Sequence record: MW349128.1
Direction: 5' to 3' (one strand)
DNA: 64,000 nucleotides
The first letter of the stretch is position 1; every line of letters begins with the position of its first letter. Below the pieces are notes generated by a model. It made no database searches and was not told the DNA's origin. It was given only the letters and a program-made list of their open reading frames with translations. Below, piece by piece: positions 55,773-58,351 of the stretch. A program made the position numbers and the translations under genes.

Positions 55773-58351
55773 TTGGAAGTGAATGGATTGAAAAATAAAT
55801 ACATTAGATGTAATTCTTGTAGCAAAGTTCAAGAATATAATGAAGATATTACATCTTGTTCTGAGTGTGGATCAGATAATATCAGTGTAATTAAATCTCC
55901 TATTGATTTAGTGAATGAAACAGAAATATTAGTTACTGAATCAGAAATAGATTTTCTATTAAATTATAATGAAAATCAAAATCATGATAAAAAAGGAAAT
56001 TCTTGTTGGTTTGATATTAGTTTAATTAAGTATTTTAATGATAATACACAAATTAGATTCATCGTTCTTCAAAATCAAAAGAGTAGAGAAGAAGATATAT
56101 TAATAGATTATGCTGGGGATTATAAAGGTGGAAATCCTATTGTTATTAATGATACTGGCAGTATTAAAACTATTTTGAATGATGTTGATAAACTTACGGA
56201 AGTTACCAAAATTAGATTTCTAAGTAAAGATTCAACTAAAAGAAAAGATTTCAGTGAATATTTAAATTCTGAAGAATATGTGAGTTATAATAAAGATAAG
56301 TATAATTTCTATAATGATGCTAAGTTAAGAACCTTAGTAAAAGTTTTAGAATCTATGGGAAATGAAATTTTCTCAGACTCTAAAGAAGATATTATATACA
56401 ATAAAATATTTACAGAAAACAATGTACTCAATTCACCTTTATTCATAAATAAAGAAGTTTTGAGATATAACGAAACTGACATCTATAAATTCTATGGAGA
56501 CTATGAATTTGATAATAAATTAAATGATATAATTTATGATCATCAATTAGAAAATGAATTAGATGTTTTTAATTACCTATATAATAAAACTAAAAATTCT
56601 AAACCTGTATTTACTGAAGATAAATCTGAAGAAGTCTATTACACAGTAACTCCTTCAATGATATTAGATGAAAACTTCTCTATTAAACCGGATCAAGGAA
56701 GAATAAATCCTAACCTATTATCTTTACTTTATTTTAAAATATTAGAAAAGAAATTAGGAATCAAATCAATAGAATTAATTTCATATGTAGAACCATCTAA
56801 AAATAGAATAAAGCTTTTCCCTGTGTCATATAATGGACAAGGATATGTATTAGCAGACTTTAGTATTGATAGTCCAATTATATTTGGTAATATGGAAGAT
56901 ATTAATAGATATAGTGCAGATAAATTTGGTTTCGATGAGAATGTTAAAGATAATGGAGAATTCAAATTTAGTGTTAAAGAAATTCCTGCTAACTTTGATT
57001 TCCAAAAAGCAATATCTAGTGATATAGAAATAATCGAAAGATTCTTTATGGAATTCAATGAAAATACTTTAAATGAAACTATCCTAGAATCAGAATCAAT
57101 CTTAAATGAAGCAGTAAGCGATAGTAAAAAGAAACGTCAGGAAATTCAAAATAAAATACTTGACGTTATATCTTCATTAGATAAAGATCAAAGTAATATG
57201 AGAAATTATAAATCTTTTTATGATGAAATGAATGATGAAGAATTTATGAGATATATTAAACGTTTCATAAATAGTGATGAGAATTTCTATATAGAAGTTT
57301 TACCTAATAAATCTGAAGCTGATATTAATCAAATACAAGAAGCTTTAGACAAACTAGAAGTTCCTATGAATGAATTTGTTTATTATAGACATGATGGAAA
57401 TAAAGAAGATCCATTAAGAACAAGATATAAAGTACCGGTTGGGTTAACTTATGTATGAGCTCAATTAAAATCATATTAACTGCTGAAAAGACATTTAAAG
57501 TTGATCAGCATCAATTAAATTGTTCAACGACTAAATATATGACAAAGAAGATATAGTCTCATCTATAAAATGAATATAGTAAAGATAAATGACTTACATG
57601 TTAAGAGGTTAAATACTGTTGTAGCCTCCTTATACAGTAATGTATATGTAAAATTTTTTAAATTGCTGGGAAAGTTTATGAAACTAATCAGCATCTAATA
57701 TTAAGTAAATAATCTTAATAAAGTTCAACGACTAAAATTAAAACTCCTAATAGGATGAATATATAGTCTAAACACTAAATAAAAATAGTGTATGAAATTA
57801 TTGTACAACAGCTTCTTTCGAAAAAGAATGCATATAGTCTAGACGCTTCATCGAGATCAATGAAAACCGGTTTTAATGAAAAAATTTTGGCCGCTTATTA
57901 TAGTAATATGATAATGATAATATTATTAATTGCTGAGAAAATTAAAGTTAATCAGCATCAATCAAATTGATTGTTCAACGACTAAATATAATGGTACTCA
58001 TAAAGAGTATAAGATATAGTCTGGCTTATATAGAAATATATAGGATAACTGCAACTCTCAGGTTCAGACAAAGTAGCAAGCGTATCAAATATGGAAGCTT
58101 CTGCATTAAGAGCAATTGGATCTCAAGATATATTAAGAGAATTAATGGGACCACGTTCAGACTCTATGAATGCTAAACAGGAAATGAATAAAAACATTTC
58201 AATGTATGGTTATACTCGTCTAGAAGATCTACCTGATGATCTTTCTGATAAAACTACTTTGAATACTACTTACTATTATTTATTAGGTGCTGGTATTGAT
58301 TCAGATTTACTTAAAGATACTAGACCTGATTATGATCAAGAAGAAGAATAA
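55773..58351 (+). CDS. Multisubunit RNA polymerase beta C-terminal subunit (probably virion RNAP), spliced: join(55773..57444,57592..57609,57804..57871,58052..58351), 685 aa
   Basis: Splicing gives VPVGYLHVKRLQQLLSKKN...KTGQLSGSDKVASVSNMEASALRAIG..ILRELMGPRSD, equivalent to the beta C-terminal G..Y..KL.H / QP..G..GEME region; late promoter. Confidence 0.8.
57445..57591 (+). mobile_element. Miniature group I intron A (147 nt)
   Basis: P1 UUGGGU:GCUCAA; P4 UGCUGA/UCAGCA; GTTCAACGACTA; GATATAGTCT; terminal G. Confidence 0.82.
57610..57803 (+). mobile_element. Miniature group I intron B (194 nt)
   Basis: P1 GAGGU:GCCUC; AATTGCTGG, AATCAGCA, GTTCAACGACTA, TATATAGTCT; terminal G. Confidence 0.85.
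57872..58051 (+). mobile_element. Miniature group I intron C (180 nt)
   Basis: P1 CGGU:GCCG; AATTGCTG, AATCAGCA, GTTCAACGACTA, GATATAGTCT; terminal G. Confidence 0.85.

Follow-up and report, generated by a model that had tools for sequence, protein, structure and literature searches.

The virion RNA polymerase beta gene of phage Machias

We analysed a 64,000-nucleotide (nt) stretch of sequence record MW349128.1 (the window), in which a gene for an RNA polymerase (RNAP) subunit, CPT_Machias_239, is interrupted by three short introns. Staphylococcus phage Machias (MW349128.1) matches the region from 55773 to 58351 with 100% identity; record positions are window positions plus 186000. The GenBank product is 'viral RNA polymerase beta subunit' (QQO92615.1). 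It is the beta subunit of the virion RNAP (vRNAP) and a homologue of AR9 gp077 (YP_009282982), which loses a hydrolase-like N-terminal part by proteolysis and whose RNAP domain is present in virions. The Machias paper describes interrupted RNAP, DNA polymerase, protease, terminase and gyrase genes, with exons predicted by protein alignment only (bioRxiv 10.1101/2020.12.14.422802). According to the GenBank note on CPT_Machias_239, its exon borders come from alignment to YP_009282982, and the resulting join has three pieces, so it cannot represent the four exons found here (Table 1). The open frame of exon 1 begins at 55773, the annotated start being 55788.

A sequence-only reading of the DNA had proposed introns of 147, 194 and 180 nt separated by exons of 18 and 68 nt, and these lengths and positions are correct to the base. 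Spliced alignment of the intronless gene of phage DC4 to Machias DNA places all borders at the same coordinates. Its sole constraint was that every intron be preceded by T and have G as its last letter; an unconstrained run misplaced the 18-nt micro-exon. The four joined exons form a 2,058-nt open frame, the translation of which is gap-free against the uninterrupted genes of DC4 (L002:1517-3550) and SA1 (L003:1517-3556), through ...YKVPVGYLHVKRLQQLLSKKNAYSLDAS.RSMKTGQL.... Within the introns the longest stop-free stretch is at most 36 amino acids (aa).

The joined frame had also been said to restore the beta-subunit motif, which is borne out by protein comparison. Profile searches were made exon by exon. 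Exon 1 matches positions 2–107 of PHROG 3233 ('RNA polymerase beta subunit') and exon 4 matches positions 137–223, the 29 positions between them corresponding to exons 2 and 3. The exon 1 match lies in its C-terminal part, which phrog_23439 matches as well, and exon 4 gives a weak match to Pfam RNA_pol_Rpb2_7. For comparison with bacterial beta we used the natural intronless DC4 allele, whose C-terminal domain aligns to residues ~1190–1360, with VGYLHVKRLQQLL over VGYM.YLKLNHLV (E ~3e-4).

Table 1. Coordinates of the introns, exons, insertion sites and related elements. Positions are those of the window unless stated otherwise; insertion sites are relative to the DC4 coding sequence (CDS). ORF, open reading frame; R1, family covariance model (see text).
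Feature	Position	Strand	Basis or remarks
Exon 1 of vRNAP beta gene	55788..57444	+	GenBank; colinear with DC4 CDS nt 1-1651
Intron 1, 147 nt, ORF-less group I	57445..57591	+	RF00028, R1, spliced alignment
Intron 1 elements	P1/P10 guide 57450-57464; P 57479-57486; Q 57504-57512; R 57522-57535; S 57551-57559; P9 57563-57579		
Exon 2, 18-nt micro-exon, encodes (Y)LHVKR(L)	57592..57609	+	matches DC4 CDS nt 1652-1669
Intron 2, 194 nt, ORF-less group I	57610..57803	+	RF00028, R1, spliced alignment
Intron 2 elements	P1/P10 guide 57616-57628; P 57662-57669; Q 57687-57695; R 57723-57736; S 57761-57769		
Exon 3, 68 nt	57804..57871	+	matches DC4 CDS nt 1670-1737
Intron 3, 180 nt, ORF-less group I	57872..58051	+	RF00028, R1, spliced alignment
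Intron 3 elements	guide 57887-57893; P 57929-57936; Q 57951-57959; R 57973-57986; S 58014-58022		
Exon 4, including stop codon	58052..58351	+	matches DC4 CDS nt 1738-2034
Site A	after nt 1651		mini-intron in Machias, AH12, PB50, LY01, Madawaska; empty in DC4, SA1, MarsHill
Site B	after nt 1669		mini-intron in Machias, AH12, PB50, LY01
Site B'	17 nt beyond B		second Madawaska mini-intron
Site C	after nt 1737		180-nt mini-intron in Machias, AH12; 1.33-kb intron with homing endonuclease in PB50, MarsHill; larger ORF-less intron in AR9 (R1 core 257 nt)
ORF-less group II intron, ~583 nt	PALS_2 L094:1899-2481; S6 L093 ~2896 onward		RF00029, RF02004
IStron-like element, 1653 nt	19526-21178 (record 205526-207178)		R1 core 19562-19713; TnpB 19785-20987; structured 3' tail ending in G
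IStron-like element in gyrB	41894-43552		
IStron-like element in virion-protein gene, 1642 nt	record 77816-79457		

Predicted ribozyme anatomy

Each intron is predicted to fold into a reduced group I core that comprises P1, P3–P7 and P9; P2 and P8 may be present or absent. Its own internal guide pairs with the last letters of the upstream exon, forming P1 with a U.G pair where cleavage occurs, and with the first letters of the downstream exon, forming P10. The P, Q, R and S core strands occur in the correct order in all three. The U.G P1 pair and terminal G that had been noted at every junction are present throughout: the pairs are T57444.G57459 (in a P1 of 6 bp), T57609.G57624 (5 bp) and T57871.G57890 (4 bp), and the introns end in G at 57591, 57803 and 58051. 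In E-value mode (901-nt search) the Rfam group I model RF00028 matches every intron over its full length and far better than chance would allow, with 26.5 bits (E 1.6e-4) for intron 1, 42.7 bits (E 2e-9) for intron 2 and 35.9 bits (E 2e-7) for intron 3. A covariance model of the core from P3 to the terminal G, built from 14 copies and called R1 here, gives 96.4 bits (E 6e-17), 76.7 bits (E 8e-13) and 101.6 bits (E 5e-18), respectively. Core elements and both models thus bear out the earlier claim of ORF-less group I introns around an 18-nt micro-exon.

The three introns are elaborated to different degrees. Intron 1 is without P2 and P8, its P3' strand being joined to J8/7 by 3 nt, and has a weak P5 of 3 bp; its P1 is TTGGGT/GCTCAA and its P10 has 6 bp, TATGTA (57450-55) with TACATG (57595-600). 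Intron 2 has P1 GAGGT/GCCTC and a perfect 8-bp P10, CTGTTGTA (57616-23) with TACAACAG (57804-11), together with a P2 capped by a GUAA loop, a long P6 and a 4-bp P8. In intron 3, P1 is CGGT/GCCG and P10 spans 3 bp; it carries an 8-bp P2 with a GUAA loop, a 5-bp P8 and a P9 with a GAAA loop. The P4/P7 strands of introns 1 and 2 are near-identical.

A family of mini-introns in Staphylococcus jumbo phages

Full-length R1 matches number 34 in LY01, 30 in Machias (63–137 bits), 22 in PB50, 12 in Madawaska and 10 in MarsHill, and there are none in the DC4, SA1 and S6 genomes. PALS_2 and Twort have one weak match each (45 and 37 bits), and AR9 has ten of 34–58 bits, most spanning 230–275 nt. BLAST matches to the family came from six Staphylococcus jumbo phages and from nothing else: AH12, Machias, LY01, PB50, Madawaska and MarsHill. 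In some AR9-like jumbo phages of Staphylococcus, mini-introns have multiplied to 10–34 per genome, and they sit chiefly in motif-coding parts of essential genes. The sequence-only reading had assumed that such introns usually carry or lie near endonuclease ORFs; this premise fails for these phages, most of the ~30 copies being ORF-less.

Core lengths of family members are 124–155 nt. Covariation is strong: across 65 aligned members, 95.9% of cells are paired, against 31–55% with slid partners, and 24 of 30 pairs show compensatory changes (P3, 5/6; P5, 4/5; P6, 3/3; P9, 7/7). The covariation score is 0.589 compared with at most 0.099. P4 pairs in 99.7% of cells, and P7 is without covariation because it is invariant. 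P8 is absent in 14 of the 65 members, intron 1 included, with 3–6 nt standing in its place.

In LY01 (record 233338-233617, minus strand) and in MarsHill (record 58286-58566), a gap of just 6 nt separates two full mini-intron cores, so that the downstream copy has no space for a P1 beyond the upstream intron. These may be introns within introns, or pairs with a common guide. In AR9, four R1-related group I introns with cores of 231–258 nt stand in tandem in one gene (record 95424-96753), a larger-sized counterpart of the Staphylococcus phage clusters.

Insertion sites in relatives

The insertion sites of the beta gene (Table 1) are occupied or empty independently of one another among relatives, and DC4 and SA1 are empty at every one. 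LY01 and PB50 also have the 18-nt micro-exon between two mini-introns. An allele in a further sequencing run (X4) carries intron 2 and an empty site C. In Madawaska the intron at site B' is 89% identical to its site-A neighbour 35 nt away, with a different guide.

A group II intron lies within 1–3 nt of site B in PALS_2 (RF00029, 65.9 bits; RF02004, 45.5 bits) and also in S6 (RF02004, 44.5 bits). A group I intron at site C of these two phages had been considered and was rejected, since the intron is group II and near site B. With the group I sites and a group II intron in one 90-nt stretch, the locus is a hot spot for two intron classes.

Evidence for splicing

Removal of each intron would proceed by two transesterifications, attack by guanosine and then ligation of the exons after the terminal G. 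The resulting mRNA, E1-E2(18 nt)-E3(68 nt)-E4, would encode the full-length subunit. An 860-nt contig from a tick metatranscriptome RNA run (X10) has this arrangement. It consists of 57173-57444, 57592-57609 and 57804-57871 followed by exon 4, which starts with 30 diverged in-frame letters equivalent to 58052-58081 and continues with 58082-58356. All three predicted junctions are joined, the micro-exon is included and no intron letters are present. In an indoor metagenome DNA run (X1) the introns are present, in contigs over 57000-57547, 57530-57946 and 58026-58324. X1 and X10 carry the same eight synonymous third-position variants in exon 3 and the same downstream flank. As evidence of splicing, the X10 contig is good though short of conclusive. 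Machias is a viable isolate, and the roughly 18 introns in its RNAP genes must be removed for either polymerase to be made. We consider it very probable that the three ORF-less group I introns, as members of the mini-intron family, are spliced out to leave a full-length E1-E2-E3-E4 subunit.

Several observations weigh against this conclusion. At the Rfam gathering threshold (50 bits) RF00028 reports nothing in the whole window, all three introns scoring below the cut-off. The alignment behind the covariation counts had been fitted to the R1 model. Both P1 (4 bp) and P10 (3 bp) of intron 3 are short, and autonomous catalysis of intron 1, with its 3-bp P5 and no P8, is uncertain. Finally, the X10 RNA and the intron-bearing DNA are from different samples, such that the contig could derive from an intronless variant or from carried-over DNA.

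The difference in samples is also what would favour an unspliced gene, either broken or made as separate polypeptides, with the RNA contig stemming from an intronless relative. This is extremely improbable. All known alleles closely related to that of Machias contain introns 1 and 2, and conservation of the group I core is accompanied by covariation. The reading frame is kept through the micro-exon and exon 3, both of which are under purifying selection, the listed exon-3 differences in X10 and X1 being synonymous third-position changes in 8 of 8 cases. Pieces of 6 and 22 aa could not serve as subunits.

If the introns are spliced, the most reduced copies, such as intron 1, might still depend for folding in vivo on a protein of the phage or host, or on an adjacent intron. 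The reduction of P8 in the 14 members and the weak P5 of intron 1 point this way, as does size: no group I ribozyme as small as these introns is known to self-splice. The Azoarcus intron has 205 nt, and laboratory derivatives of sunY ~180 nt. Against such a dependence, the type without P8 is found repeatedly, at many positions and in more than one phage, with P3, P4, P6, P7 and P9 intact, which argues that it is under selection as it stands, and there is no maturase-like ORF nearby. We regard the need for a helper as somewhat unlikely; in our reading, catalysis by the introns would be protein-free.

The sequence-only reading went further and suggested that RNAP production could be gated by the order of splicing or by the skipping of an exon. 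It was right that skipping exon 2 keeps the frame, which other skips shift. Tandem group I introns do skip exons, as in Twort orf142 (23-nt exon) and Coxiella 23S rRNA (34-nt exon), and in the SIOphi polymerase exon skipping affects 47% of transcripts (PMC10136302, PMC11878797). The near-identical P4/P7 strands of introns 1 and 2 could likewise mispair. However, the P1/P10 guides differ for each intron, and in experiments on tandem introns differing guides favour exon inclusion (PMC10136302). DC4 and SA1 do without all three introns, occupancy varies by site, and skipping exon 2 would cost six residues of a conserved motif. Exon 2 is included in the sole RNA contig, albeit that contigs drop rare forms. 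A gate tuning the amount of functional vRNAP beta by splicing order or by skipping of the 18-nt exon is thus unsupported and very unlikely, and the elements are presumably selfish rather than regulatory.

Micro-exons in other essential genes

Introns are spread over six RNAP subunit genes of Machias, about 18 in all, of which 15 are of the mini type. R1 finds three mini-introns in the vRNAP beta gene CPT_Machias_239, three in vRNAP beta-prime N, two in vRNAP beta-prime mid, two in vRNAP beta C, two in beta-prime N of the non-virion RNAP (nvRNAP) and four in nvRNAP beta C; the two beta C genes each have, in addition, one intron with a homing endonuclease gene (HEG). The prohead protease gene has three introns, the terminase large subunit gene at least three and NrdE one. 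Both DNA polymerase genes, gyrB and two structural genes are further intron-bearing genes.

Micro-exons are characteristic of the family. The spliced products of the micro-exon genes are colinear, residue for residue, with intronless DC4. The shortest micro-exon, GCCGAT (record 2981-2986), encodes AD of the catalytic GADYDGD motif in nvRNAP beta-prime. Mini-introns of 182 and 180 nt lie on either side of it (record 2799-3166), the spliced product equals that of DC4, and GenBank annotates no intron in this gene, nvRNAP beta-prime N. Micro-exons of 11 nt, in the prohead protease gene (record 51273-52035, minus strand), and 16 nt, in vRNAP beta-prime mid (record 164632-164974), are also placed between two mini-introns. 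Other internal exons in the Machias clusters have 20 and 29 nt. The GenBank joins consist of three pieces for the protease and two for beta-prime mid, each one piece short; several micro-exons have therefore been missed.

In gyrB, a TnpB-bearing IStron-like element follows the first ~22 codons and a 177-nt mini-intron lies further on (44996-45172). The deposited gyrB CDS begins downstream of the IStron, leaving the N-terminal exon unannotated.

Relationship to IStrons

A ribozyme of the same family forms the 5' part of three Machias elements (Table 1) that encode a 400-aa TnpB and split genes cleanly. The TnpB has HTH_OrfB_IS605, OrfB_IS605 and Cas12f1-like TNB domains. The 1,653-nt element cleanly interrupts a 6-kb gene, its insertion point corresponding to the junction of DC4 nt 111918 and 111919; here GenBank gives two separate hypothetical proteins and a 'transposase'. 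IStrons, known from Clostridioides difficile and C. botulinum, combine a group I intron with an IS605/IS607 TnpB (PMC10690162). Introns 1–3 of the beta gene, unlike IStrons, have no ORF and no guide-RNA region, and the mini-introns may be non-autonomous relatives of these elements.

A more specific proposal is that mini-introns are IStron derivatives resembling miniature inverted-repeat transposable elements (MITEs), moved at the DNA level and not by endonuclease homing or reverse splicing. Besides the shared ribozyme, TnpB copies are found in the two genomes richest in mini-introns (four in Machias, six in LY01), several mini-intron insertion sites end in GAT, as do all three IStron sites, and the Madawaska gene holds its near-duplicate pair with differing guides. 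DC4 has no TnpB. Yet TnpB is also missing from PB50 and MarsHill, with 22 and 10 mini-intron copies, and a Y1 transposase (TnpA) is absent from the five genomes searched. Nor do the 5' flanks follow a single strict motif, GGT, GAT and AGT all being seen. We judge this origin unlikely on present evidence. Reverse transcriptase was considered as a sign of mobility by reverse splicing and set aside: it occurs in all five genomes, in intron-rich phages and in the intron-free DC4 and SA1 alike, and does not discriminate.

Comparison with known systems

The closest precedent for the three-intron Machias gene is Twort orf142. According to PMC10136302 and PMC11878797, which describe the work of Landthaler & Shub (1999), orf142 is interrupted by three ORF-less group I introns in tandem; their cores are very similar, and one internal exon has 23 nt, compared with 18 nt in Machias. 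Exon skipping is documented there, whereas only the exon-included form is seen for Machias, in a single contig. The two also differ in size, the Twort orf142 introns being full-size and those of Machias 147–194 nt, without peripheral helices and in one case without P2 and P8. Full-size Twort introns are IA2 ribozymes of ~250 nt.

The RNAP introns of AR9/PBS1 share a position with Machias. AR9 gp077 (YP_009282982) is the same gene and is interrupted at the same site C, after the MK(S/T)G codons. Its phage's introns reach only 35–58 bits with R1, however, with most matches at 230–275 nt; sites A and B are empty and there is no micro-exon.

Minimal group I ribozymes with a compact core are represented by the Azoarcus tRNA-Ile intron and shortened sunY. 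The GNRA loops L2 and L9 of the Machias introns could dock as in Azoarcus. In contrast to Azoarcus and sunY, the Machias introns are natural, 50–60 nt shorter, found within protein-coding genes and present at tens of copies in each genome.

Introns in these genes (Korn et al. and the AR9 annotation), tandem ORF-less Twort introns with a short exon, and IStrons are already known. Korn et al., who described MarsHill, Madawaska and Machias (bioRxiv 10.1101/2020.12.14.422802), reported the intron-disrupted genes of the same genome; their account, unlike the present analysis, has no RNA-level description, intron family or copy count. Our literature search found no RNA-level description of the mini-intron family, of the P8-less subtype, of 10–34 copies per genome or of 6–18-nt micro-exons, nor any paper on these mini-introns or on a smallest group I intron. 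That the family combines some of the smallest natural self-splicing group I ribozymes (146–194 nt), with one subtype lacking P2 and P8, a MITE-like offshoot of IStrons, four sites within 90 nt, ~30 copies per genome and micro-exons down to 6 nt, one of them in GADYDGD, is a composite proposal that we hold only tentatively and with more doubt than belief.

These findings bear on annotation, on ribozyme size and on intron spread. The GenBank record gives three pieces for the four exons of the beta gene, and at least four further essential genes have introns or micro-exons that it misses. For this phage group standard Rfam scans list no introns at all, and the proteomes built on such records are consequently in error at catalytic motifs. 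If self-splicing, a natural group I family of 146–194 nt, with some members lacking P8, would redefine the minimal natural core, and such compact introns would serve as parts for intron-based RNA tools. Closely related phages carry between 0 and 34 copies, and the vRNAP beta gene has four group I sites with a group II intron at one of them. This range of copy number and the multi-site gene make for a rare natural system in which to study the spread of ORF-less introns and two ribozymes sharing an exon of 6–18 nt.

Directly upstream of the beta gene, the gyrase A gene (window 52096-55650) contains an annotated intein with a LAGLIDADG-type endonuclease, and the intein is also present in DC4.

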